A DNA stretch of 64,000 bases, taken from the sequence record OR413585.1; one strand, 5' to 3'. Below, piece after piece: positions 4,645-36,753 of this stretch. Position numbers and translations under genes: made by a program. Below the pieces are notes generated by a model. It was not told the DNA's origin and did not search any database. It saw only the letters and a list, made by a program, of their open reading frames with translations. Each line of letters begins with the position of its first letter. Position 1 is the first letter of the stretch.

Positions 4645-5442
4645 ATGTCTTTTACTTCAAAACAGAATCTGCTAAAACTCATCAACGAAGAGAATAAGAT
4701 AAGCCCACCGCTTACCTTTGACGATGTTGATATCGGACTGCCGGAGGTTGTGTCAGTAGACGGTCGTGATTCGGAGGTAGTCCTTACCTCAAAAATGCGC
4801 GGTGATGAAGGTACGCAAGTGATTGTGGACTACCATCGTCGTCCATTAGAGGACTACCTTAAAGGCGATGTTGCCTTTGGAGACGAGGACGTGCAAACCA
4901 CGCACGACTTACTCGCGGCGATTAACGAGCGTTTTAATCTGTCTATCTTACCTGAGGATATCGAAGATAACCCCATTGATGGACAGACGCACACAGTCGT
5001 TGCTGTTGAAACTTCCCACGAGTGGCGAAGTCAAGCGGTCATCGAGCTGAAACCTGCTACACCTCTGGCAGAAGTAGTAACCAATACAGAGTTGAGCGGT
5101 CTTCTGTACCCGGATCACCAGGACATCCAGTTGGGTCAGGCGTATATCTATTCGCGTGACATCGATTGTAGCCACATCTCTCGTTTCCTGAGCCTCTTAG
5201 CGGTCGGTATCGAGGTAGATGACACGGCGTTGGCAATCGAACTCAACAAATGTGTTCCTGAGATTTGGGTAGCTGAAGATACCCCATCCCCGTATAACCT
5301 GCGTGGTGCCACTGTCGTATTCGACGGCGTACCTGCAGACTTGCCGGGAGCAAATACGGCGTTCGCGAAAGTCGTGTCAGTGCAACTGACCGATAAATGT
5401 ACGAACTTCCAGGGCAGCCTCAACCTACACTTTAACAACTAG
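4645..5442 (+). CDS. putative virion structural protein, paralog family A
   Basis: Shares N-terminal ...Y(H/D)RR/L.., linker T.L.GL.YP and C-terminal L.LHFN motifs with neighbours. Confidence 0.75.
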   Translation: MSFTSKQNLLKLINEENKISPPLTFDDVDIGLPEVVSVDGRDSEVVLTSKMRGDEGTQVIVDYHRRPLEDYLKGDVAFGDEDVQTTHDLLAAINERFNLSILPEDIEDNPIDGQTHTVVAVETSHEWRSQAVIELKPATPLAEVVTNTELSGLLYPDHQDIQLGQAYIYSRDIDCSHISRFLSLLAVGIEVDDTALAIELNKCVPEIWVAEDTPSPYNLRGATVVFDGVPADLPGANTAFAKVVSVQLTDKCTNFQGSLNLHFNN

Positions 5443-5452
5443 GAGGGTATAG

Positions 5453-6295
5453 GTGTCTATTTACGATAAGCCCTCGAAAGAGATGTTGTTAGATGCTATT
5501 AACCGACAGAACGGATTAACGGCCAATCCACTCACATGGGAGCAGGTTGCAACTGGCTTCCCTGAGTCTGTCCAAACGCCTGGCGCTGACCGGAATACGC
5601 GTGTGCTCTTATACGGGTTGAACGGCAAGGGCTACAAAGGCAACGTTACGCTCGAATACGACCGTATCGAAATGGAAATTCTGTTCAGGAACGTAATACC
5701 GGTAGTCGTTGCCGACCCGGTAAATAAACTCTCTGAGTTGTTGCCGTTTCTGAATGCGAAATACGGCTTGTCTTTAGTTGCCGACGATATCGTTGACCAG
5801 TCAGTAAAAGATTTGGGAGAAAGCTGGTTAATCGATGTGACTATTAAGCCCGGTTGCTTGGCCTGGCAAGGTGGTTTCCGTTTACGCTTTGCGAAGTTCT
5901 TCCCGAACTTGGCGGATGTGGTGACGGATGTTGACCTCAGCGCAATTATCGCGCCGTTCGTGGTTGCTAGTAAACCACAGGCTGAGTATGTGGCGTATGG
6001 TTACGATTGGACTGAACTGCAAAAACAGTTCACTACCGATTGGGCTTACAACCGCGCAATCACCGCGGCGGATGTTGAATTGCTTAACGAAGTGGTGCCA
6101 TTAAAGTTTGCATATGTGACGGGGGCGACTGCGCAACCTGAACAAATTGCGCTTCAAGGTGCACGATATATGGGGATAACTTCAGTCACACCGAACGATA
6201 GTTACAACCCCGATTATCAGCGTGTGGCGATTATCAAGCTAGCTGCGGACAGCAACTACGCCGGTAATCTCATCCTTCACTATCTCCCGATATAA
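5453..6295 (+). CDS. putative virion structural protein, paralog family A
   Basis: RNTRV..GKGYKGNVTLEYDR motif; ends LILHYLPI. Confidence 0.75.
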   Translation: MSIYDKPSKEMLLDAINRQNGLTANPLTWEQVATGFPESVQTPGADRNTRVLLYGLNGKGYKGNVTLEYDRIEMEILFRNVIPVVVADPVNKLSELLPFLNAKYGLSLVADDIVDQSVKDLGESWLIDVTIKPGCLAWQGGFRLRFAKFFPNLADVVTDVDLSAIIAPFVVASKPQAEYVAYGYDWTELQKQFTTDWAYNRAITAADVELLNEVVPLKFAYVTGATAQPEQIALQGARYMGITSVTPNDSYNPDYQRVAIIKLAADSNYAGNLILHYLPI

Positions 6296-24839: not shown

Positions 24840-24878
24840 CCTACCTCCCTTCGGGGAGGTAGGGCCTTTATTTTCTTT
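24840..24878. terminator. bidirectional terminator
   Basis: CCTACCTCCC-TTCG-GGGAGGTAGG flanked by A- and T-rich runs. Confidence 0.8.
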
Positions 24879-24880
24879 GC

Positions 24881-25552
24881 TTACATGCCGAGTGATTCGG
24901 ACAATGTTTTTAATCCAGTGTAATCGCGTTTTTCAGCTAACTCACGGATTTGGCGTTTGTTATCTGCCATTGCTGAGTGCAACACTTGGTCACGTGCAAC
25001 AATAGCGGCCAGCAACGCTTTACATTGGGCTACTGTAAACGGACTGTGCTTGGTATTCAGCGTATCGAGCCAGTATTCTGGTGCGGTATCTGCCTGAATG
25101 TATTGACCGAGGATGGTACGCGACGATTCATCGGCTTGAAAGTGACTACCTTCAAACTCGATATAACCATGGCGCTCATCTTCGTAGCGGTGGTCGAGTT
25201 CCAACAGCATCTTCTGCACGTCTTCGTAAATGTAACGTGCGGTAGATTTCAGATTCCCGCGAATTTCGTCGAGGTCAATCTCCAACACATTAGCAATAAA
25301 CTCTTTCGTGCGTTTCAATGTGAAGTTAGCTTCAATCTCCGACATCTCATACAGCTTCATGCGTGCCAGGGCTTCTTTATCAGACATCCCTTCGATGAGA
25401 TGGTAATGGAGTAATGCACAAAATCCGGTACGACCCTGATCCTGCGCACCGATTCGTTCCATGAAATTACCGTGACGATCAATCGGCAAATCACGCTGGA
25501 AATAACGGGCGCGGATCTCTTCGTTCGTTAAGCTTTTGTCAGTAACAGACAT
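24881..25552 (-). CDS. DUF4376-like (tail-fibre assembly-type) protein
   Basis: C-terminal GYIEFEGSHFQADESSR..WLDTLN..FTVAQCKALLAAI pattern. Confidence 0.6.
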   Translation of the reverse strand: MSVTDKSLTNEEIRARYFQRDLPIDRHGNFMERIGAQDQGRTGFCALLHYHLIEGMSDKEALARMKLYEMSEIEANFTLKRTKEFIANVLEIDLDEIRGNLKSTARYIYEDVQKMLLELDHRYEDERHGYIEFEGSHFQADESSRTILGQYIQADTAPEYWLDTLNTKHSPFTVAQCKALLAAIVARDQVLHSAMADNKRQIRELAEKRDYTGLKTLSESLGM

Positions 25553-26094
25553 TCGTCCTCCTCAATCAGGCCAAGTTCTAACAACAAACCGAAGTCCAGC
25601 ATCTGGAAGTCCTGATCGAGGTTACCGGCCCACAACACAGAAATGTTGTGTTGCTCTTCTTCTTCCAACTGCGGGAGCAGGTGTTCTTCGAAGATTTGAC
25701 GCTCTGTGTAATAAGCGTCAACCGGGTTATTGGAGCGTAAGTTACGAATACGCATCCGCGGGAATGACAAGCCCAATGCCACTAAACTTTCAGGACTGGC
25801 TTCATCGATAGAGTGACGTAGCAGTTCGATTTTGTGGCGTGGGTATGCAAGCAGTCGCTTCTCAAAGCCAGGGTTGCGCTTTTCGATTTCCGCGACAGAC
25901 TCGTGTCCTTTCTCAACGCAGTAGACCGGGATCATCACATTCAGCCCGTATTTAATCAACAGGCTTTGGATTTCATCAGTGAAGTCTTCCCCTGCCACAA
26001 TTGCGTGCACATTGTACAGCTTGCTTTTGCGCAGGAAGCGATCGACCAAGTGCAGCTTACGCTTCGTAAAATTGTGAATCAGTATTGACTTCAT
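25528..26094 (-). CDS. hypothetical protein in the rSAM cassette (start MKSIL)
   Basis: GGAG RBS upstream of ATG at 26094; overlaps both neighbours. Confidence 0.65.
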   Translation of the reverse strand: MKSILIHNFTKRKLHLVDRFLRKSKLYNVHAIVAGEDFTDEIQSLLIKYGLNVMIPVYCVEKGHESVAEIEKRNPGFEKRLLAYPRHKIELLRHSIDEASPESLVALGLSFPRMRIRNLRSNNPVDAYYTERQIFEEHLLPQLEEEEQHNISVLWAGNLDQDFQMLDFGLLLELGLIEEDECLLLTKA

Positions 26095-27385
26095 TCTGGG
26101 CTCCGTTTTGTAATTTTTCTGCTTCAGCACGTTGGCGTACACAACGTGAACAATAGCACATGGATTTATCGTGCAAATCTGATGCACGGGTCGTACCAGT
26201 TTTCTGATACCAATATTCCGCCGCCATCAACTTCGCAGTAGTCCAACCACACTGACGACGCTCGGCGTGATACGCTTTACGGTCTTCCAGTGTACCTTCA
26301 CCGTTTTCGTACGATGCTGCTGCGCAGCTACCGCAGCTGTGTTTCATCGGACACCCTAAACAGGTTTCTGGGTAGTTGGTGTACTGCGTTTGAATCTCTT
26401 CTAACAGCTTACCACCGTCCAGGCTCACAAACTCACGACCGACCAGTTCTGCTACAGCAGAGCGGGAAGTTACCGTGGACATGAAACGGTTACAACCGTA
26501 AATCTTGCGATCAAAGCCGAGACAGGTCATGTGCGTCAACGTACCGCAGTACGGTTTCAGGCGTTCTGGGTCGAGACGAACAGAGTCGTCATGTAAGAGT
26601 TTGTCACGCCAATCCGGGTCCCAAGTTGCCATAAAGTTCAGGCCATCCGGGATGATGTGCGTAATCGTGTTACGCGGGTTGGTGTGCAGACCCTTCTCAA
26701 TCCAGTAGTCCATCACGTCCATCATCTGGTTCGCGATATCCAACGCCATATGGCGCGGCAGGATATCTTCGTACGTTACGTTACCAGAGATGGTGCCACC
26801 GCCGGACATGTCAATTAACGATTTCATGCTGGCGGCATAGTGCGGCAATGTATCGATCGTAAACGTCGCCTTTACGCCCAGTTCAGCGATGCCAACACTC
26901 TTCAGATAATTGTAACCGCGTACCGCAGCTTCGTACGACCCTTCACGCGTCGTGGTAAAGATACGATATTTGTCATGGACTTCAGGTAAACCATCGATGG
27001 AGACCCCAATAGACAGTTTGTCTTTCCAGCGCTCGATAATTTCTTTGTTCAGCGGACGGTCCAGAAGCGTACCGTTCGTGGAGATACTGAACATATACGG
27101 GCGATTGTGTTCTGCGCATAACTTCTCTGCGGTTTCAAAGGCCGCCAAAAGAAGTTTAGGCTGCATGAACGGCTCACCACCGATGATATCGATGATGACT
27201 TCAACGTTCGGGATATCTTTATCACGCTCGAAACAAGCGTGGATAAAATCAATCACGTCTGCTACTTTGTTGTTACGCGGATATTTACGCTCGTAGCAGT
27301 ATTCGCAGTCCAGGTTACATGACAAGTTAGTCACAACCTGATACGTGCGTGGTGTGTACTGGATTTGCTGTTCGCTATTACTCAT
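26057..27385 (-). CDS. radical SAM/SPASM peptide maturase
   Basis: CNLDCEYC; IIGGEPF; ISTNGTLL; SIDG; SPASM cysteines YCG..C..GCNRF..CLGC..SCGSC..QC. Confidence 0.92.
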   Translation of the reverse strand: MSNSEQQIQYTPRTYQVVTNLSCNLDCEYCYERKYPRNNKVADVIDFIHACFERDKDIPNVEVIIDIIGGEPFMQPKLLLAAFETAEKLCAEHNRPYMFSISTNGTLLDRPLNKEIIERWKDKLSIGVSIDGLPEVHDKYRIFTTTREGSYEAAVRGYNYLKSVGIAELGVKATFTIDTLPHYAASMKSLIDMSGGGTISGNVTYEDILPRHMALDIANQMMDVMDYWIEKGLHTNPRNTITHIIPDGLNFMATWDPDWRDKLLHDDSVRLDPERLKPYCGTLTHMTCLGFDRKIYGCNRFMSTVTSRSAVAELVGREFVSLDGGKLLEEIQTQYTNYPETCLGCPMKHSCGSCAAASYENGEGTLEDRKAYHAERRQCGWTTAKLMAAEYWYQKTGTTRASDLHDKSMCYCSRCVRQRAEAEKLQNGAQNEVNTDSQFYEA

Positions 27386-28292
27386 TGTTCGCCGCCCGTT
27401 TACGCTTAGCAGAAATTACACGGTTGATGTAGTTATACGCATCAACGCCGATAGAACGCGCCAGGCGATTACAGCCGACTTCCAATATCTCTGGGGCGTT
27501 CTGAATTTGCTCCTGCGTACCGTCGGCGTTAAGCCACAGCACTTCACTGCACGTGTTGCACTCGGTATCGAACATTTTACTGATCGCAAGCCCACATTCA
27601 GAATCGTTCTGCATGTTAAGGCGTTCGATATTGTCGAGTATTTTCCAATACCCGTACATGAAGTTCATGACGTGGTCTGGCGATAACGGTTTCGGCATCA
27701 TCGCATCAAACAACAACGACACACCACCTGGACGGTAATGATAGATTGCTCGGTGCAGCTCGATGAAATCTTCGTACCAGCGTTTATCACCTAACTGGTC
27801 ACGCGTCATCACACCCCAGGTGTAATAGTTGTCCAGCTCGTACAGCACTTCCAGCGCTTCGTGATTACCACCGTTTACAAAGTTCATAAACGGACGTTCC
27901 GACTTCTTGTAGCCGTCAATGGACACAAAGATAAGGTCGAACTGTTTCAGCAACGGCAGATGTGATTTACGCATCTTTAAACCGTTGGTGTACATGTGAT
28001 GACGGAGGTTCGGATGAGACTCCTTCAACTCGTTCACGAAGTCTTCAATCTTACGCTGCGCTAACAGCGGCTCACCGCCCGTCCAATGAATCTCACCGAT
28101 ATCCGGATTCTTCTCTAAAATCGAGAGAATCTCTTCACGTTGAAACTCACGAGAAATATCTTCTCTATCCATGTAATAAGCCCCTCCACAGAAGCTACAG
28201 TCTAAGTTACACTTAGAAGTTGCGACAACCGACAGAATTGACGGTTTGTCGTACAGTTCAGACGAGATCCTGGATTCTACTTGATCTGTCAT
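27378..28292 (-). CDS. second radical SAM protein with a short C-terminal Cys region
   Basis: CNLDCSFC; WTGGEPL; YTNG; VSIDG; C-terminal CNTC..GC; GGAG RBS before ATG 28292. Confidence 0.88.
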   Translation of the reverse strand: MTDQVESRISSELYDKPSILSVVATSKCNLDCSFCGGAYYMDREDISREFQREEILSILEKNPDIGEIHWTGGEPLLAQRKIEDFVNELKESHPNLRHHMYTNGLKMRKSHLPLLKQFDLIFVSIDGYKKSERPFMNFVNGGNHEALEVLYELDNYYTWGVMTRDQLGDKRWYEDFIELHRAIYHYRPGGVSLLFDAMMPKPLSPDHVMNFMYGYWKILDNIERLNMQNDSECGLAISKMFDTECNTCSEVLWLNADGTQEQIQNAPEILEVGCNRLARSIGVDAYNYINRVISAKRKRAANNE

Positions 28293-28314
28293 TGCAGGTT
28301 GCTCCAGTATATTT

Positions 28315-29202
28315 TTAAATATAATCAATGGCGAATAAAGGATCTTCGTCTACGTTAGCGCCAGGCACCAGTAACATCGGGTCGTGATAGGCAGCTAAAA
28401 TTTTGTTCAGGTCGGCGTGTCTTTCGTTCAGGCGTTTCAAATCGGCCAACGTTACCGAACGACCACGAATCTCAGAAACAGCTTCTGCTTCTTCTTTCGT
28501 TAAATCCACCTTCGTTAAGAGGAAACTTACCAGCTTACTCAAGTCCGCTTCTGTCGCCGGGTAATCCCCATATCGAGTTTGAACCAGGTGTTGCATCCAC
28601 GGCTTACGAATACGTTTGGTGATTTCAAAATCGTCAGTCAGCGCATACCAGACAGAACGCTTTTTATCCCACACGAACTTATAGCTATACGCCATCATGT
28701 CCGCTAAACGGGTGATGCCGAGTTCTTTATACCCCTCGATATCGATGTATGGTTCGGTGTCGAAATACGTTTCCGTATCGGCAGGTACCAGTACAAAGTA
28801 GTAAGGGAACGAGCCCAGATAGTCCGGACTCCACCAACGGCGCGCCATCGGTTTTGCTTCCAGTTCGTCAAACGGTGTAAACATCAGTTCTAAATCGACG
28901 CTGTTGTTCAAAATCCCTTCACTGAAGAAATACTTACCGTCGACCAACACGCCGCGAGAGTTACCATCGCCGTTAAAGATAACGATGGCCTCTGCAACCA
29001 TATCACGGATCTTAAACGTATTTTCTACAGTGTAGTTCTTCTTATCGGTCAAGAAGCGACCACGAACCTTTGGCCACTCACCAGGAATCTGTGCAATCAG
29101 TCTGACTTTGTCAGCAAGGTGCGCACGCACTGAATCTGGGGAAGATAGATGCAGCGGGTGGTTGAATGTGGTTTTATACGCAAGATGCAAATCGTTTTTC
29201 AT
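28315..29202 (-). CDS. hypothetical protein between precursor peptides and rSAM genes
   Basis: GGAG RBS; tightly packed in the operon; no cysteines. Confidence 0.7.
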   Translation of the reverse strand: MKNDLHLAYKTTFNHPLHLSSPDSVRAHLADKVRLIAQIPGEWPKVRGRFLTDKKNYTVENTFKIRDMVAEAIVIFNGDGNSRGVLVDGKYFFSEGILNNSVDLELMFTPFDELEAKPMARRWWSPDYLGSFPYYFVLVPADTETYFDTEPYIDIEGYKELGITRLADMMAYSYKFVWDKKRSVWYALTDDFEITKRIRKPWMQHLVQTRYGDYPATEADLSKLVSFLLTKVDLTKEEAEAVSEIRGRSVTLADLKRLNERHADLNKILAAYHDPMLLVPGANVDEDPLFAIDYI

Positions 29203-29224
29203 TTAATACTCCGAACGTTTTCTG

Positions 29225-29431
29225 TTATCGATTCCCCGCTCCACGGCTACAGCTTCCGCTGCAGGACCAGCTACACCCACCATTACAGTTATAGTGAGAA
29301 AGCGGTAAGCCAGCCAGGTTATTTGTGGTCGACACGGTGCCCTGGTTAGCGATATAGTTGTTTGCCTGTGCGGTTGTAATGTAACCTTCTGCCGTAACGA
29401 GACGGTTTCGAATAGTCTTGAGACTGATCAC
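29225..29431 (-). CDS. Cys-repeat precursor-like peptide 3 (48-aa leader + 4 Cxxx units)
   Basis: SHYN-CNGG-CSWS-CSGS-CSRG; GGAGG RBS; leader paralogous to the two upstream peptides. Confidence 0.8.
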   Translation of the reverse strand: MISLKTIRNRLVTAEGYITTAQANNYIANQGTVSTTNNLAGLPLSHYNCNGGCSWSCSGSCSRGAGNR

Positions 29432-29446
29432 ATAAGCCTCCGTCAG

Positions 29447-29851
29447 TTAGGAGTTAGGACCTGAACAACCACCAGAGCACGCACCTGAGCAGTTTGCGGA
29501 GCAGGATTTACCACAACCCCCAGAACAGCTGCCTGTGCACGTGCCGCTACAACCACCAGAGCACGAAGAGCTACAGCCCGTGCAGCTGCTGCTACAGCCT
29601 GATACACAGTTTGCCGAACAAGTCGACCCACAACCACCTGTCGCAGACCCTGTGCAGCCGCCAGAGCAACTTGAGCAGCTAAAAGAACACGTACCACCAC
29701 AGTCGTAGTGCGAACGACCTTGACCTGCGAACAAGTCAGCGTTATTCGTAGCTTTATTGCGAATGTAGTTTTGCACATTCGTGGTATTCTTTAGAGCGTT
29801 TGCATCGATCGTGTTTAATCGGTTATTCAGTTCTTTTAATCCAATTGCCAT
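29447..29851 (-). CDS. Cys-repeat precursor-like peptide 2 (50-aa leader + 20 Cys)
   Basis: SHYD-CGGT-CSFS-... Cxxx/Cxx repeats; GGGGGA RBS. Confidence 0.85.
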   Translation of the reverse strand: MAIGLKELNNRLNTIDANALKNTTNVQNYIRNKATNNADLFAGQGRSHYDCGGTCSFSCSSCSGGCTGSATGGCGSTCSANCVSGCSSSCTGCSSSCSGGCSGTCTGSCSGGCGKSCSANCSGACSGGCSGPNS

Positions 29852-29861
29852 TTAATCCCCC

Positions 29862-30254
29862 TTAGCGACCTGAACAGCCGCCGGAGCAGGCCCCGGAACA
29901 ACTGGAAGAACATGAGCCACCGCAACCACCTGTGCAGTTACCGGTACAGCTACTACTGCAACCACCAGAACAACCAGAGCAACCAGAACAGTTACCGCCA
30001 CACGTCGAAGAACAGCTACCGATACAAGAAGCAGAACAGCTTCCTGAACAGCTCGAACAGCCGTGCGAGCAACCGTTAGAGCATGTCCAAGAACATGTCC
30101 CGCCGCAATCTAGCTGTGCTTTCGTCCAACCCCCAAATCGGTCTGCCGCATTATGGGCTTTAGAGGCCACTTGCGCCTCGATGCGGGGGCCTGTCGCCAT
30201 GTTAGCTTCGACTATCTGGACGCGGTTTCTGACGTCTTTAATAGATATCGCCAT
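29862..30254 (-). CDS. Cys-repeat precursor-like peptide 1 (49-aa leader + 21 Cys)
   Basis: AQLD-CGGT-CSWT-... repeats; AAGGA RBS. Confidence 0.85.
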   Translation of the reverse strand: MAISIKDVRNRVQIVEANMATGPRIEAQVASKAHNAADRFGGWTKAQLDCGGTCSWTCSNGCSHGCSSCSGSCSASCIGSCSSTCGGNCSGCSGCSGGCSSSCTGNCTGGCGGSCSSSCSGACSGGCSGR

Positions 30255-30319
30255 TACGCTTCCTTAAAAAGTAGAACGAGCGGACTATGTCCATAAACAT
30301 AGTCCGGCTCGTAAACAAG

Positions 30320-31522
30320 TTACTTAGTACCCGCTTCAGCTTGAACATCGTCGCGCGAGGTGAGGTTGTTGTTGACGTGAACAGCAGCCTGCACAACACC
30401 TCCATACTGTTTATGGAGGTAATTCGGGTGTGGGTTATCCGCAGCCGCATGGTTCGCCAGATTCTGGTTTGCCTGCGAAATTGCGTTGGTGTTGTTTATA
30501 ACCTGAGTTTTAAGACTGTTGATTTGTCCTTGCAGGTTATCAATTTGCTGTTGGAAGTCTTTGCCCTGATTCTCAAGATCCGTGACGCGCTGATTTGTTT
30601 CATTCAGTGCAGACTGAAGATCGTTAACCATCTTCTGTAATTGCAACACCAGAGAATTAAGGTTAGCTAATGCTAACGACATTTTCTGGTAATTTTGAGC
30701 AACCACGTTAAGCTGGTCGTTCCACGCGGCTAACGAAGCCACAATTGCATCGATGCGTTGCCCCAACGCCGTGTCTGCTGCTCTTAAGTCGCCGATATCT
30801 TTGATAGTGGCGTCAATGGCAGTCTGTACACTTTGAATCAGAGCACGAATCTCCGTCTCCGTCAGGCCATTAACCTGATGAATGTCGAGATTGTGTACGT
30901 TACCTTCGGCGTTGATGTGGACATTTAAGGCATCGAGGAAGTCGTTTTTCAGACCGTCTAGAATACCTTTAATTTCCTCCAGCTGTACTGCAGAGCCGGA
31001 GTTAATCGCATCTTTAATCCCCGCGAGTACGGTAATGATATACTCAAAACCGTAGATATCGCCAAGGTCTTTATACGTCGGGGCGGACGGGAACGTATCG
31101 GGTACGTTTCGAAGATCCTTGAAGTCCACCACGCGGTCTTCAATTTTCAACGACGCAATCGCTTGTCGGATGCCTTCGACGTTCGCAGACTGAAAACCAC
31201 CAACGACTTGCGCAGAGACTTCGATATCAGTAGGAATGGCCGAGTTAGTTACCACCACACCCATGACCACTTCGCGGTTCTTGGTCATTTTCTGATATGC
31301 AGTATGTGCAAAAATCAGCTCGTAGTCTGTGCCGCGTTTGTACGGGTAGACACCCGGTTTATTCGCAGCCGCCAAGCGGAAGGTATCCGCGTAGAAAGCT
31401 CCGTCAGGAAATGCAAAAGCCCGGTTAACTTTACCAGAACCTAACGTAATACGCCGTGTAACGGCGTTCGACGTTAATGTCCCGGTAAGGTCGAGCGGGT
31501 ACTGATGAATGATTTCGGCCAT
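30320..31522 (-). CDS. tail-fibre-like virion protein with a long coiled coil (start MAEII)
   Basis: RGTDYEL N-domain shared with the three large upstream genes; heptad C-half; NHAAADNPHPNY; AAAGGAG RBS. Confidence 0.75.
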   Translation of the reverse strand: MAEIIHQYPLDLTGTLTSNAVTRRITLGSGKVNRAFAFPDGAFYADTFRLAAANKPGVYPYKRGTDYELIFAHTAYQKMTKNREVVMGVVVTNSAIPTDIEVSAQVVGGFQSANVEGIRQAIASLKIEDRVVDFKDLRNVPDTFPSAPTYKDLGDIYGFEYIITVLAGIKDAINSGSAVQLEEIKGILDGLKNDFLDALNVHINAEGNVHNLDIHQVNGLTETEIRALIQSVQTAIDATIKDIGDLRAADTALGQRIDAIVASLAAWNDQLNVVAQNYQKMSLALANLNSLVLQLQKMVNDLQSALNETNQRVTDLENQGKDFQQQIDNLQGQINSLKTQVINNTNAISQANQNLANHAAADNPHPNYLHKQYGGVVQAAVHVNNNLTSRDDVQAEAGTK

Positions 31523-31569
31523 TGCCAAACTCCTTTGATTGGGGCTTCCTTGCCCCATAGCGCTATCTG

Positions 31570-34500
31570 TTAGGTACGGAACATAAGATTGACCTGGATA
31601 ATATCAGGCTGCTGACGTCCTCTCTCGTTCACCCAATCGTGCGCAATCGTTAACGTAAGATCATCGCCATCCCACGCCACGATCGGTGGTGGGAATAAAC
31701 CCTGAGCGCCCGTGGTAACAACCGGGATTGCACCTGCCACATTCGTAAACGTATAGCTACGACTGTTCAGAACAACTGGAGTGCCATAGGTTTCTCCCGG
31801 CTGTGGTAAGATTTGAATCTTACTATCCGAAAGATCGGTGGTGATTGGTAGTCCCCCCGCTTCCGTGAAAAGCCAAGAGCAAATATGCTGGTTGGCTGTT
31901 TCGAGCGCTGAAGAACTTACCGCCGCGACAAATGTAAAGGTGCACGGCACGCCTGCTGGCAGAGAGTGTTGTTTGTGATACACGGTATGTGGTGACGGCA
32001 ATAACACTTCTGGATTTTCGTCAATGTTAACATCCGTACCTTCCGCTTCGACGTTGTAGAAAAAGCCATCCACCGCCTCCCATGGGGCAACGTGGACATT
32101 AAAGGTCGTTTCTACTCCCGGTGTACCTGGGACGACGAATTTACTTTGCACCACCACCATCAAGTTCGTTGAGGTCGGTGAGAAAGCGGGCGTTGGAATA
32201 CCTACCCACTCCATTCCCAACGATGCCGCTTCACCGTTCTCATCAGCCGTTACCGTCGCGATTGTTGTAGGATGCTTCCAAAACGCCCCCGACTTGTTTG
32301 CCTGAGTAAACGCCGGCAAAGTTTTCAAGCCTTCGAAACGTTTGGAGACCATCGCTTTACCGCGACGCTGTGCGTCAGATACGGTATAAAGCAACTGACT
32401 ATCCAGATAGCCTTTCGTAGCATCGATCGACAAAGGACCCATCGCTTCTTTACGCAATGGTGCCAGTCTGCCCGTTGCTGCATCCCTTCCCACTTCCACA
32501 TCATGCTTATTCTCAACCGCCGCGTGTTCCAACAGTTGTTTCACCGCCCCCAATCGCTTAGCATGTTCGACGTTAGTCTCGACGACTCGCGACGAGCCCG
32601 TTTTAACATACCCGATATAGAGTTCCGTTTCAGTGTCTGGATGTTGAATCACGTCCATTACGTACTTCGGTGTACCATTTTCTACCTTGGCGTGCAGGTA
32701 GAATGTCCGGTTCTGATGGTTTGTTGGAAATGCTGCGCTGAGGTCAATATACCACGTAGGCAGCTTATAAGTGCTCGAGCCGAAACGCAGGTCAACTTCC
32801 TCAGTCACGTATACCAGCCAACCTTCGGCGGTTTCCACACCAGCAATGACGACCGATTCAGTCGGGCCACTAAAATTAGGAGCCGCGACAAAATCACTCG
32901 ACGACATTGCGATACCACCACAATAGACGTAGTCGAGAGATGAGTTGTGTAGCATCACCTGATCACGATGAGCCAGATAAGCTGGGCTGACTGGAGTGTG
33001 GGATGGTGCCATGCGTCCAATGCCGTGTGGAGCAGAAGAACGCGTCCAGGTACCATTAGACAGCGTAAGACCAACACCGTAGTTAAGCGCACCCAAGTCG
33101 CCAATTTGGCGCAAGGTTAACGTGTGTGGAAGATACAACCCGAACTGAGTACCATCTACTGACACCAGTGTAGGTTGTCCCGGCCGGCGTGTTTTTCCTC
33201 CCGTTATCTCACCCAACGTAGCATAGTTCAAGCCATAGTCGAGGTTGTTATAGAAGTCAAACAGTGCCAATATCGCTGCGGGGAATGTTACCTGCCCGTT
33301 GCTGATCGTTGGTTTCAGTGTAAAGTAGTAGATATCCAACACGTTAACATTGTTCACAGTACGCATACATGCTACTTGTGCTAACGTGAGCGGTGTGGCC
33401 GTACCAATGCCGATGAACCAAATGGAGAACAGTGCCTTTCCGGCGTTATTTGCGGCAAGGATAAATTCCGAAGCATAACCATTCGCAGCGCCAGCCGGTG
33501 CACCGTCGATGATCATCTGCTTCATCTTATCCCATTCGGCTTGTGACAGCGTCAACCGATCGGCATGAATCGTGAAAGTGCCAGAAACGTTGTGGTAAGG
33601 GAATGTTTCTGGTCCTGTGCAATACCAGCCGTTTAACTCTGTACCAGGCGACGCCGGTGTAACAATGTGGCACATCTGCGACAGATTCTCGTACGTGGTA
33701 GAATCTACTACACGACGATTGTTAGTTGGTCCATACCCCGCTTTACCTGAATAAGTGGTGTTCGGATCAAACTCAACTTCAATTGCCAAACGGGTACGCG
33801 GCTGTGACAACCAGATAAGTCTGGAATTCGCTCCCAGAGTCAGCGGATACGCCATACCCAGCTCGTAGATAGAACCACGACCTTGGTTTAACATTACCGC
33901 ACTAAAACTTCTGGCAGTGAAGTTGTAGTCGCACGACAGGTACTCGTACCAACTCACACCGTCATCTAACGTTGTAATCGTGACATAAGGCATTAGGTCG
34001 CGATCGCCTGCATGTCCTTGCGAAACGATATACTTGTCTTGCGATGTTGCAAAGGTTCGGTTATTAGCTTGACCTTCGCCCCATTTCCGGCTCGGAATCC
34101 CAATCTCAGCGCCACCGTTATAACGAACCGTGGTAAGATCGGCCACAATAGGGAATCGATCAGCACCTTCCAGCGTTATCGTCATTGAACTACAATCAAC
34201 AACAAAGCTTGACACCCATTGTTTAAAGTTAATAGTTTGCCCTGTAGTAGAAGCAAACCAAACCGTTGGAGTTAAACCAACACGAAAGTTCAGCCCATCC
34301 ACACCAATCGCGTGATTACATTCCGGACCATGGACGAAATTTCGCGCACTATTCCACTTCGCCGATGCGTCTGCGTAGATTTGTGTTACTGGCGCTACCA
34401 ACACATCTGTATCAGAACGTTTCTGACCCTGACGCAAGTAGATATTATCTCCCGACGTTAACATCCCACCTGTTAACACATCCGCCACAAACGTGTTGCT

Positions 34501-36753
34501 ACCACCCAGATTAAGTTCGTCGAGTGCGATGCTACGCATACTCACGAAATAGTCACCGGAGGTAAGCACAGTACGGAGCAGATAAACCCGCTCGTTGCAA
34601 ACGATCAAATCGTTTGTTGATGGATCAACAACCCATGGAGCGGTTGTAATCACACCGGCCGCGTTACCATTTCGGTAATCGCCCAACTGAACTTTAACAA
34701 CACGATGATGTTTTGCATGGTCAATGGTGCCGTCAAAGATGACCAGGTAGTACGCACCGTCACTGCCTAAGCAGATCATTGCATCTGTACCGGTAATCAC
34801 AATAGCAACCAGATTCACCCCAGGATACGCCGACATTCCAGCGGGTCGATAACGTACGGACGTCTGCTGCATATTTTCCAGCGTATTGCTTGGCGACACA
34901 TCAGCATAGGCGTAATAGATAGCCCAGTCACCTGGTGGATTCCCGTTAGAACCGTTACGGAGCGAGTAAACCTTACCAGACTCGTAACGCGCCAAACCTT
35001 TCTGCCAGGTTTGGTTTTTGGTATACCCTTCGTAGTTCCCCTGGACTGGTATAGGCAAGAAGTTATTGTTGCCGTACGATGATCCACCGACAGTCCACGC
35101 CGGTAATAACGTACCAATCTTGTCATTCAGTGTGTCAATCTTTTGTTCAAGCAAGAAGCCCTGACGCGAAGTGACCATCTTATCCGAGGTAGTGTCGATT
35201 GCATCCCACAGTTTAGCCAAACCTGTAACAGACGTGGATGCGTACGGCACGTTATCGAGATCTGCAATGGTGTGGGTGTGCGTTGTAAGCGCTTTGCCTG
35301 ATAGCACGGTACGCAATGCGTTAGTAACAGGCTTTTCTAACGGTCCGGTATTGTCCATTTTCTCAATACCGAAATCTGCCGCGGTTAAGGTCAGATGCAT
35401 CTGCCCGTTTGAATCTAATACAAACCCTTTACCGTTGACTGTATACGTGTCGTCCACATATCCGTCGAGTTTGTTCTTCAAGTCAGTAACAGCTTTTTGG
35501 GAAATCGCTGTGGACGCTGCAGCGGATGCCGAGAGGTTAGTAATCGCAAACAAACCCTGCACAGTTGTGGTTGCTGCAGGCAGCTCCGCATTCATGTAAA
35601 CTTTGTTTGTTTCTTTACCAGAGCCGTAAATCTTCAACGTGTCGCTGGACTTGAAGTAGGCGTTTGCTGGAAGTATCTTCACCGAGGTCAAGTACATCTT
35701 AACCATATCCGGTGTAACGAGATACACGCTGTTATACACAGGTGCAAGCACACCTGCATCATAAGCGCCCCACTTGTCACCTGCTTTACCCGAGTGAACC
35801 CAAAGCGTGTTCAGGCCAGCACTGAACTCCGTAGCGATACCCGGTTCGTTGTTATCCTGGTCAGATTTTAATACCAGCGGTTTTGTCGAGGTGATGATGA
35901 ACTTCTCACCTTTCATGCTGATAACGTGACCAGACGTTGTTTGGAACGTAATCGCGTCGTTATTCAGAACACGCATACGGCCCAGTAAATCACCCAGGGT
36001 ATTATCCAGAAGCATGTCAACATGTTTCTGTTGGATACCGCTGGTAGACATTAGCGTCACTAACTCTGCCAGTGTACGTCCAAACGCTTTAGTCGCATCC
36101 ACGGCCTTACCGAGCACAGGGAGTGCGCCAATGTCACCGCAGGTGTAATCATGTGCATTTTTAATCAGGTGGTGTTGATACATTTCGTCATCAAACACCT
36201 GTTTACCGTTCTGATAAATCAAATCGGTAACTTCGGCAAATGCCTCATCCAGTTCGTGGGCGCGCTCTAAAATACCCAGACGGATATCTTCCAACGCCTT
36301 TACGATTTCATCGCGAAGAATCGCTTCTTCGAGATCTTTTGGCGGGTCGATTGGCGAGATAATCGGTGGATATTTCATCAGCTCAGACCAATCGCAGTTG
36401 CGCGGGTCTTTCATATCCGTCTTAACCAGATACTTGCCGATTTCAGAAGCAGGGATGCGATACTGTCGACCAACCGACAACAACTCGTATTCTACCTCTG
36501 TGGCGTTCAGCAGCATTATGCTGCCGTATATTGCATCGTTCTCAGCCTCGGCTAATTCCTGGAAGTAATGTCCTAAGAAATAATCAAGACCTTCTATTAA
36601 CTTGCGTTTGGTTCCGGTTGTTTTATCGGTAACGGTTAACGTTAACCCGATGCGATAGAACGGTGCTTCGACGGGAATGACCGTCGAATAACGGTTCGGG
36701 TAAGTAGCGGTACTGAGGGTACCGTTAAACTGCGCCGCATCTTCTCTCGGCAT
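31570..36753 (-). CDS. large tail-fibre/baseplate protein, about 1727 aa (start MPRED)
   Basis: PFY..LIEGLDY N-domain; fibre repeats ATTTVQGL and ASTSVTGL; GGAG RBS. Confidence 0.8.
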   Translation of the reverse strand: MPREDAAQFNGTLSTATYPNRYSTVIPVEAPFYRIGLTLTVTDKTTGTKRKLIEGLDYFLGHYFQELAEAENDAIYGSIMLLNATEVEYELLSVGRQYRIPASEIGKYLVKTDMKDPRNCDWSELMKYPPIISPIDPPKDLEEAILRDEIVKALEDIRLGILERAHELDEAFAEVTDLIYQNGKQVFDDEMYQHHLIKNAHDYTCGDIGALPVLGKAVDATKAFGRTLAELVTLMSTSGIQQKHVDMLLDNTLGDLLGRMRVLNNDAITFQTTSGHVISMKGEKFIITSTKPLVLKSDQDNNEPGIATEFSAGLNTLWVHSGKAGDKWGAYDAGVLAPVYNSVYLVTPDMVKMYLTSVKILPANAYFKSSDTLKIYGSGKETNKVYMNAELPAATTTVQGLFAITNLSASAAASTAISQKAVTDLKNKLDGYVDDTYTVNGKGFVLDSNGQMHLTLTAADFGIEKMDNTGPLEKPVTNALRTVLSGKALTTHTHTIADLDNVPYASTSVTGLAKLWDAIDTTSDKMVTSRQGFLLEQKIDTLNDKIGTLLPAWTVGGSSYGNNNFLPIPVQGNYEGYTKNQTWQKGLARYESGKVYSLRNGSNGNPPGDWAIYYAYADVSPSNTLENMQQTSVRYRPAGMSAYPGVNLVAIVITGTDAMICLGSDGAYYLVIFDGTIDHAKHHRVVKVQLGDYRNGNAAGVITTAPWVVDPSTNDLIVCNERVYLLRTVLTSGDYFVSMRSIALDELNLGGSNTFVADVLTGGMLTSGDNIYLRQGQKRSDTDVLVAPVTQIYADASAKWNSARNFVHGPECNHAIGVDGLNFRVGLTPTVWFASTTGQTINFKQWVSSFVVDCSSMTITLEGADRFPIVADLTTVRYNGGAEIGIPSRKWGEGQANNRTFATSQDKYIVSQGHAGDRDLMPYVTITTLDDGVSWYEYLSCDYNFTARSFSAVMLNQGRGSIYELGMAYPLTLGANSRLIWLSQPRTRLAIEVEFDPNTTYSGKAGYGPTNNRRVVDSTTYENLSQMCHIVTPASPGTELNGWYCTGPETFPYHNVSGTFTIHADRLTLSQAEWDKMKQMIIDGAPAGAANGYASEFILAANNAGKALFSIWFIGIGTATPLTLAQVACMRTVNNVNVLDIYYFTLKPTISNGQVTFPAAILALFDFYNNLDYGLNYATLGEITGGKTRRPGQPTLVSVDGTQFGLYLPHTLTLRQIGDLGALNYGVGLTLSNGTWTRSSAPHGIGRMAPSHTPVSPAYLAHRDQVMLHNSSLDYVYCGGIAMSSSDFVAAPNFSGPTESVVIAGVETAEGWLVYVTEEVDLRFGSSTYKLPTWYIDLSAAFPTNHQNRTFYLHAKVENGTPKYVMDVIQHPDTETELYIGYVKTGSSRVVETNVEHAKRLGAVKQLLEHAAVENKHDVEVGRDAATGRLAPLRKEAMGPLSIDATKGYLDSQLLYTVSDAQRRGKAMVSKRFEGLKTLPAFTQANKSGAFWKHPTTIATVTADENGEAASLGMEWVGIPTPAFSPTSTNLMVVVQSKFVVPGTPGVETTFNVHVAPWEAVDGFFYNVEAEGTDVNIDENPEVLLPSPHTVYHKQHSLPAGVPCTFTFVAAVSSSALETANQHICSWLFTEAGGLPITTDLSDSKIQILPQPGETYGTPVVLNSRSYTFTNVAGAIPVVTTGAQGLFPPPIVAWDGDDLTLTIAHDWVNERGRQQPDIIQVNLMFRT

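Follow-up and report, generated by a model that had tools for sequence, protein, structure and literature searches.

Cysteine-repeat peptides encoded with two radical-SAM enzymes in the tail gene unit of an SPN3US-like jumbo phage

The 64,000-nucleotide (nt) stretch of sequence record OR413585.1 analyzed here, called the window throughout, encodes on its minus strand three short paralogous proteins of 68 to 134 amino acids (aa), namely, P1 (130 aa, positions 29862..30254), P2 (134 aa, 29447..29851), and P3 (68 aa, GTG start, 29225..29431), in which an N-terminal part is followed by short cysteine-containing units. We propose that P1 to P3 are free-standing copies of a module that forms the C terminus of tail fibers in other phages and that they are substrates of two radical S-adenosylmethionine (rSAM) enzymes encoded downstream, which would turn them into cross-linked rods on the tail fibers. 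We favor this reading with moderate confidence. It draws on the constant unit count of P1 within its clade, on relatives that carry the module at the end of true tail fibers, and on a conserved cassette in which the repeat protein is accompanied by rSAM genes. The source of the window is an SPN3US-like Salmonella jumbo phage of the genus Seoulvirus; over positions 25000-32000, its sequence matches that of Salmonella phage SPLA5c with 100% identity and those of SPN3US and many relatives with 98% identity.

Sequence, coding status, and unit counts of P1 to P3

An N-terminal part of about 49 aa is common to the three proteins. In P1, this part (49 aa) precedes an 81-aa core with 21 Cys in 21 units, 18 of the form Cxxx and 3 of the form Cxx. 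P2, a paralogue of P1 with a 50-aa N-terminal part, has 20 Cys together with a single 8-residue unit that carries Ala at the expected Cys register, giving 21 units; the Ala column is occupied by Cys in the Derbicusvirus clade. P3 comprises the N-terminal part and a cap with 4 Cys. A preliminary description of this DNA had reported the shared N-terminal part, the 21-unit register, and the Ala-for-Cys unit, and all are present as it described them. Cys accounts for about 25% of the residues, with small side chains between. With the cap excluded, the first position after Cys is Ser in 67%, Thr in 15%, and Gly in 12% of the units, the second is Gly in 56% and Ser in 24%, and the third is Gly in 37%, Ser in 29%, and Thr in 14%.

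P1, P2, and P3 are real genes under coding selection. A Shine-Dalgarno-like purine run lies 5 to 8 nt 5′ of each of them, and their products all match phrog_6085, a phage protein family listed as of unknown function (P1, 1e-40 over residues 1-129 of 130; P2, 3e-41; P3, 2.7e-24). In codon alignments of 12 divergent P1 loci, position 3 was variable in 123 of the 125 columns, compared with 83 for position 1 and 67 for position 2, and more than half of the differing codons were synonymous.

P1 and P2 are nonetheless systematically missed or misframed by gene callers and in GenBank records. The SPLA5c record has no annotation over positions 29203-30319, the GenBank gp166 of SPN3US (equivalent to 29443-29778 of the window) is an open reading frame (ORF) in the wrong frame across P2, and Erwinia phage records carry opposite-strand or wrong-frame ORFs in the P1-P3 region. 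Automated gene callers either skip about 900 nt where P1 and P2 lie or predict a fragment there. The exact P1 and P2 sequences were not found in a collection of 15 billion proteins. An exact match to P3 is present in 371 blocks of the same collection, 175 of which hold contigs of 0.2 to 1 Mb. Many members of the P3 cluster are labeled as Salmonella enterica or E. coli proteins, and the jumbo phage therefore seems to be often coassembled with bacterial isolates. As a separate observation, the Cys/Ser/Gly codon bias leaves long ORFs open in several frames of P1 and P2. In the record of Salmonella phage SPFM12 (L105, LR535911.1), the region is cut into segments of 60 bases that have each been reverse-complemented without changing place (160 matches, every one in minus orientation, with the order of the segments colinear). 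The "broken" cassette genes of SPFM records were accordingly rejected as biology, since in SPFM12, the sole record examined, they are a formatting artifact; the same artifact is probably behind the fragmentary hits and nonsensical annotated proteins of other SPFM records as well.

The number of units was compared in a clade sample of 27 loci from GenBank and IMG/VR, covering Seoulvirus, Machinavirus, Erskinevirus, Derbicusvirus, and Wellingtonvirus, with long-rSAM identities of 63 to 100%. Exactly three peptides in the same order are encoded in 27 of the 27 loci. P1 has 21 Cys in all of them (20 distinct sequences), with an identity of the N-terminal part down to 33%, core lengths of 78 to 84 aa, and 8 spacing patterns. 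Six unit positions are polymorphic between three and four residues, and unit 5 is invariably Cxx. Single-codon insertions and deletions inside P1 units are recurrent, and not one gain or loss of a whole unit was found in P1; the constancy of its 21 Cys exceeds chance. P2 (20 distinct sequences, 11 spacing patterns) combines 20 Cys with the Ala unit in three genera; it has 21 Cys in Derbicusvirus and 23 in the Wellingtonvirus clade. The 20- to 21-aa core of P3 has 4 Cys, and 2 Cys (the cap alone) are left in the Derbicusvirus and Wellingtonvirus clades.

From the equal counts of P1 and P2, the preliminary description had suggested a length-defined structure. The constant unit count fits such a structure, with 21 in P1 throughout and 21 units in P2 outside Wellingtonvirus; what did not hold is any wider meaning of the number itself. 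Across the family of related proteins described below, the counts range from 16 to more than 150 (16-18, 20-22, 25-30, 34, 44, and more), so that 21 as a universal number was ruled out. Identical counts and patterns are also shared by clusters with less than 50% sequence identity. One pattern of 18 units, in which unit 9 is Cxx, is found in P0062, P0075, and P0077, and four further clusters have near-identical variants of it; another pattern, of 29 units, is found in P0083 and P0090, and P0086 and P0115 have close variants of it. Since the counts elsewhere both differ and recur, 21 is specific to this lineage, and the rule is a fixed count within a lineage. The repeat counts of related phages, which had been named as a check on the earlier suggestion, are thus lineage-fixed rather than random.

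Fiber fusions and the enzyme cassette

A profile of the three window peptides was searched against 1.84 billion representative sequences and gave 174 protein matches. A large group of these shares the junction seen in the window, with the S and W columns of unit 2 at least 90% conserved (alignment A4); the aromatic residue that had been singled out in unit 2 of the window peptides is therefore a feature of the wider family. The segment ahead of the first Cys is also similar, as illustrated by P0081, which has NADKLDGYDGDYYR followed by CNNGCSWTC, and P2 of the window, which has NNADLFAGQGRSHYD followed by CGGTCSFSC. Many matches start at profile position 5 to 9 yet sit inside proteins of 185 to 560 aa, and nearly the whole "leader" is therefore an internal segment in these proteins. 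Three of them (P0094, P0176, and P0181) have tail-fiber or tail-collar PHROG domains in their N-terminal part and phrog_6085 at the C terminus. A further protein, found independently via the enzyme (L032), combines a PF12571 tail-collar fiber domain (1.8e-40), coiled-coil repeats, and 11 terminal Cys units.

Because the module is the C terminus of true fibers and the trio of genes beside it (accessory protein, short rSAM enzyme, and long rSAM/SPASM enzyme) is conserved, the so-called leader of P1 to P3 is more likely a fiber neck or docking segment than the leader of a ribosomally synthesized and posttranslationally modified peptide (RiPP). The preliminary description had likewise doubted that the leaders are simply cleaved. 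This part of its claim gains indirect support from the homology, from about residue 5 onward, to internal segments of proteins of 160 to 560 aa, several with tail-fiber domains at the N terminus. Its argument, a likeness of the leaders to the coiled coil of the adjacent fiber gene product gp167, was not supported, as a leader profile matched neither gp167 nor any other ORF of the window.

No tail-fiber anchor or shaft domain was found on P1 to P3 with Pfam and PHROG, only neck, cap, and repeats. The NCBIfam scan of P1 to P3 returned Cxxx families alone, and a protein search with the leader alone gave no candidate. Precomputed PF27846 matches exist for P0160, with weak ones for P0077, P0085, and P0099. 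In a gut phage (L012), a 193-aa Cys-repeat protein is encoded right after a fiber-like gene, and its 21 Cys are probably a coincidence. In L094 (7001-12040; P0053), a 1679-aa protein with Flg_new repeats ends in 152 Cys units and a nearby rSAM gene is interrupted by a Hint/intein domain.

The rSAM genes of the window lie 0.9 to 3 kb downstream of P1 to P3 on the same strand. The product of the long one, gp163 (26057..27385; 442 aa), has as its best match among all families the NCBIfam "CXXX-repeat target" maturase TIGR04115 (125.6 bits, E = 3e-36), followed by PapB (1.1e-32, profile positions 12-319 of 330), and further matches include GggB, other thioether or cyclophane maturases, and TIGR04463 (57.6 bits). 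The nearest solved structure is that of CteB (5wgg). Along with a PF04055 match (9.6e-15), gp163 has an invariant cluster motif at C23, C27, and C30, invariant C-terminal cysteines at C280, C288, C298, C342, C345, C351, C354, and C379, and a C-terminal Cys triplet, the spacing of which we take to be of the SPASM kind. It thus shows both the Cx3Cx2C cluster motif and the C-terminal Cys-rich auxiliary-cluster domain of rSAM/SPASM maturases. The short enzyme, gp164 (27378..28292; 304 aa counted from the annotated ATG, the longest ORF extending to 28328), matches PF04055 (2.3e-15) and gave no SPASM match; its Cx3Cx2C motif is invariant, and only one or two C-terminal Cys are conserved, one of them invariant. 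Between the enzymes and the peptides lies the gene for gp165 (28315..29202; 295 aa; phrog_8030), the accessory protein. Its AlphaFold2 (AF2) model has a predicted local distance difference test score (pLDDT) of 90, and a fold search with this model against the PDB and BFVD found nothing outside its own family.

Whether such enzymes accompany the repeat proteins elsewhere was read from six peptide-derived hits with enough flanking sequence, none of which had been ascertained through the enzyme. Adjacent rSAM genes were present in six of the six. The hits of subfamily A, to which the window peptides belong, have in five of five cases a short rSAM gene (254-282 aa), a long rSAM gene (369-471 aa), and a gene for a 224- to 250-aa protein, and all five of these cassettes are located within phage structural modules. 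The C-terminal 105 aa or so of gp165 are homologous to the 224- to 250-aa cassette proteins of distant phages (hhalign probabilities of 95% and 92%), and homology (1e-14) also links the accessory protein of L090 to that of L032. This homology and the co-occurrence together therefore define a four-part cassette, i.e., a Cys-repeat fiber end, an accessory protein, a short rSAM enzyme, and a long rSAM/SPASM enzyme.

Variants of this arrangement were also observed. In two SPN3US-clade contigs of IMG/VR, L015 (2542-3453, 303 aa) and L030, an extra short rSAM gene is inserted between P1 and P2; L015 keeps the canonical short rSAM gene at 5061-5984, and these phages thus hold three rSAM genes. A more elaborate relative of the cassette in IMG/VR (L033, 219-7768) has, among five rSAM genes, two paralogous proteins of about 200 aa with a common N-terminal domain of about 95 aa, CxC/CxxxC repeats, and 31 to 35 Cys. 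A scan of bacterial genomes with the long-rSAM alignment returned just 5 distant relatives. At one of them, in an Omnitrophota metagenome-assembled genome (L088, 5423-5986), a 187-aa protein with His-x-His motifs ends in a run of CxC repeats, and its gene is directly upstream of, and overlaps, an rSAM/SPASM gene.

Among described systems, the top-scoring families for both the window peptide and the window enzyme belong to the Cxxx-repeat rSAM target system (TIGR04114, TIGR04115, TIGR04117, and PF27846). As in that system, tandem Cys-x-x-x units are encoded here beside an rSAM/SPASM maturase. The window proteins differ in scoring under the cutoffs (19.6 bits versus 20 for the peptide and 125.6 versus 350 for the enzyme), and the phage adds a second, short rSAM enzyme, a gp165-family protein, a collar-plus-aromatic cap, and a tail-fiber context. 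No chemistry or function of the Cxxx-repeat family was found in the literature searched. The nearest experimentally studied case is CrpC of Methanococcus voltae, a SPASM rSAM enzyme with three clusters by which Cys-to-(i+3) thioethers are formed in a Cys-rich repeat protein; its partners CrpA and CrpB have their first 47 residues in common (PMC13692751). CrpA and CrpB thus resemble the window peptides in being protein-sized, Cys-rich substrates with a shared N-terminal part of about 47 aa, but their repeats are 17 to 34 residues long with C-x-x-Q/D motifs, and their context is archaeal and cellular rather than that of a virion. CrpC itself belongs to TIGR04463, to which the window enzyme gives just the 57.6 bits mentioned above, and has a RiPP recognition element (RRE). 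PapB, CteB, and GggB also belong to the rSAM/SPASM enzymes and form thioethers from the Cys residues of short repeated motifs. Their substrates, in contrast, are short and leader-cleaved, with 1 to 6 Cys and defined acceptors (Asp, Thr, and others), whereas P1 has 21 Cys in units in which only Ser, Thr, and Gly accompany the Cys, no protease was recognized in the cassette genes, the context is that of structural genes, and no equivalog cutoff is reached.

Gene order around the peptide genes

P1 to P3 share one minus-strand unit with tail genes. No strong terminator occurs before a bidirectional terminator-like hairpin (24840..24863; 10 bp, 7 GC), which closes the unit. Immediately upstream of P1 is the gene for gp167 (30320..31522), a fiber-like virion protein of 400 aa with a long coiled coil that matches phrog_2163, "virion structural protein" (3e-107), with weak matches to tail-fiber PHROGs and matches to coiled-coil families. 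Upstream of gp167 is gp168 (31570..36753), a large tail protein of 1727 aa; in SPN3US, gp168 is a tail protein similar to gp131 of phiKZ, at the baseplate periphery or fibers (PMC5105663). At the other end of the unit, the gp162 gene (25528..26094; 188 aa; phrog_7988) keeps its position in all SPN3US-clade loci, and the unit's last gene encodes gp161 (24881..25552), a DUF4376 protein (PF14301). Both are neighbors whose membership in the system is uncertain.

Between the gp167 stop codon and the ribosome-binding site of P1, the minus strand can form an RNA hairpin (30276..30312) of 16 bp and −24.3 kcal/mol (z = −3.7; 0 of 200 shuffled sequences were equally stable), with a U-rich run after it. 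This hairpin may be a partial terminator or a stabilizer that tunes the ratio of fiber to peptide transcripts. A read-through fusion of gp167 and P1 was rejected because the length of the spacer, 65 nt, is not divisible by three. From this region, gp168 alone is mentioned in the SPN3US papers, and we found no paper on the cassette, on SPN3US gp163-gp166, or on rSAM-modified tail fibers.

A proposed thioether rod and its alternatives

In the mechanism that we propose, the module would consist of a short amphipathic helix, a collar segment, and a two-unit cap with the conserved aromatic residue, followed by the Cys-x-x-x run. Just two modest helices are predicted by AF2, at residues 5-19 and 22-33 of P1 (pLDDT of about 67), and the strictly hydrophobic columns of the N-terminal part follow a 3-4-3 spacing over about 11 residues, no more than about two heptads. 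Rather than being a throw-away leader, the N-terminal 49 aa or so would be the handle by which the gp165-family protein and the two rSAM enzymes hold the chain, and they would also connect the peptide with the gp167/gp168 fiber or with other chains. The long SPASM enzyme would form an intramolecular thioether between each Cys and a carbon of a residue in its own 3- to 4-residue unit or the following one, as its homology to thioether maturases suggests. By analogy with characterized cases, the product may be a string of about 21 small rings, one per unit. Such a rod would be stiff, redox independent, and protease resistant, and its synthesis would be possible in the cytoplasm, the reducing conditions of which prevent disulfides from forming. 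The short rSAM enzyme would make a second type of modification, possibly at the cap. The number of units would set the length of the rod, which would explain why the count is conserved within a lineage. A fuller version of this proposal is that the cassette generally turns the Cys-repeat end of a fiber into a polycyclic thioether rod, with a length counted in Cys units, and that in SPN3US-like phages this end has been split off into the P1 to P3 chains, which are joined via their N-terminal helices on gp167/gp168; we put this version forward only tentatively.

Several observations weigh against the cross-linked rod. The AF2 model of P1, built from a 21-row alignment, is unstructured, with a pLDDT of 44 overall and below 50 in the core. 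The enzyme score is well under the curated TIGR04115 cutoff, and the peptides all stay below that of TIGR04114, with 17.1 bits for P2 and 13.7 bits for P3, P1 being marginal. No fused RRE/PqqD was matched on either rSAM enzyme in Pfam or NCBIfam, and an N-terminal RRE would have no room, as the cluster motif begins at residue 23 of the long enzyme and at residue 40 of the short one. The units are without the Asp, Asn, or Gln acceptors of characterized ranthipeptide systems; with no acidic or amide acceptor, the acceptor may therefore be an alpha carbon or a Ser/Thr side chain. No proteomic or cryo-electron microscopy record of P1 to P3 in virions was found, and P1 and P2 could not have been detected by proteomics because they are absent from protein databases. 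As the clade peptides are separate small proteins, a soluble role is possible. Finally, the repeat DNA is not a high-identity tandem array and has just weak, short arrays, so that slippage may be infrequent and account for part of the stability of the count. An origin of the repeats from tandem DNA prone to slippage was itself rejected, given how weak and short these arrays are.

Of the other explanations, one would have the module act during assembly, registering or stapling three fiber chains much as a foldon or intramolecular chaperone does, possibly through interchain links, with P1 to P3 as the three chains; the mature virion might then lack the module or contain it in trimmed form. Known C-terminal trimerization or chaperone elements of phages include the T4 fibritin foldon and the intramolecular chaperone domains of fibers and spikes. 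Like them, the module is a small C-terminal element that follows a coiled-coil segment or shaft in fused relatives, so that a functional analogy is possible. However, no sequence or fold relation was found (a PDB profile search with the peptide family gave nothing below E = 1), and these elements need no rSAM enzyme. The presence of exactly three paralogues in every clade locus, and of a P3 that retains the cap alone, would suit three registered chains, although most relatives have one Cys-tailed protein instead of three, and P1 and P2 have unequal unit counts in one clade (21 versus 23). A T4 gp13-like neck gene lies one gene from the fiber gene in L102 and directly upstream of it in L103, which is also in favor of an assembly role; in T4, the whisker gene adjoins gene 13. 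To our knowledge, interchain cross-linking by rSAM/SPASM enzymes has no precedent, and we regard this explanation as rather unlikely.

We also consider it unlikely that P1 to P3 are classical RiPP precursors, of which the leader of about 49 aa would be cut off and the modified cores freed at lysis as soluble antimicrobial, signaling, or antidefense peptides unrelated to the virion. P1 to P3 do look like such precursors in that they are small, have a leader in common but a hypervariable core, and are encoded beside rSAM/SPASM enzymes that resemble RiPP maturases. A Gly-Gly or Ala-Gly pair lies about 8 to 10 residues ahead of the first Cys, and multiple precursors are common in RiPP clusters. 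Yet the cassette genes of about 35 loci yielded no identifiable protease or exporter, and the rSAM enzymes show no RRE domain. The genes are placed within a late tail-gene unit, the module is the C terminus of true tail fibers in relatives, and the segment before the first Cys is itself conserved across the fused proteins. That the Cys ladder consists of free thiolates binding metal or iron-sulfur clusters along the fiber, metallothionein-like or as in the metal-stabilized tips of some phage fibers and spikes, with the rSAM enzymes serving another purpose, would suit the abundance of Cys between small side chains and the lack of an AF2 fold without ligands but is highly improbable, since two rSAM genes and an accessory protein stand beside every sufficiently flanked relative across very distant phages, the nearest enzyme families modify Cys-rich peptides, and a Pfam scan of P1 and P2 up to E = 10 matched no metallothionein or other metal-binding family.

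If the cross-linked rod is correct, it would be the first RiPP-type rSAM modification of a virus structural protein, i.e., a virion protein modification of a kind not yet described, made by a four-gene cassette that is widespread among tailed phages. Such a rod would be a covalent modification of tail fibers that nobody has sought and, made in the cytoplasm, would stand in for disulfides independently of the redox state. The findings also tie an orphan, purely bioinformatic rSAM target family, the Cxxx repeats, to a concrete setting and to a model phage, SPN3US, two conserved genes of which have been missing from annotations and from the 15-billion-protein collection. The lineage-fixed counts, 21 here and 18 or 29 elsewhere, predict that the length of the rod would scale with the number of units.

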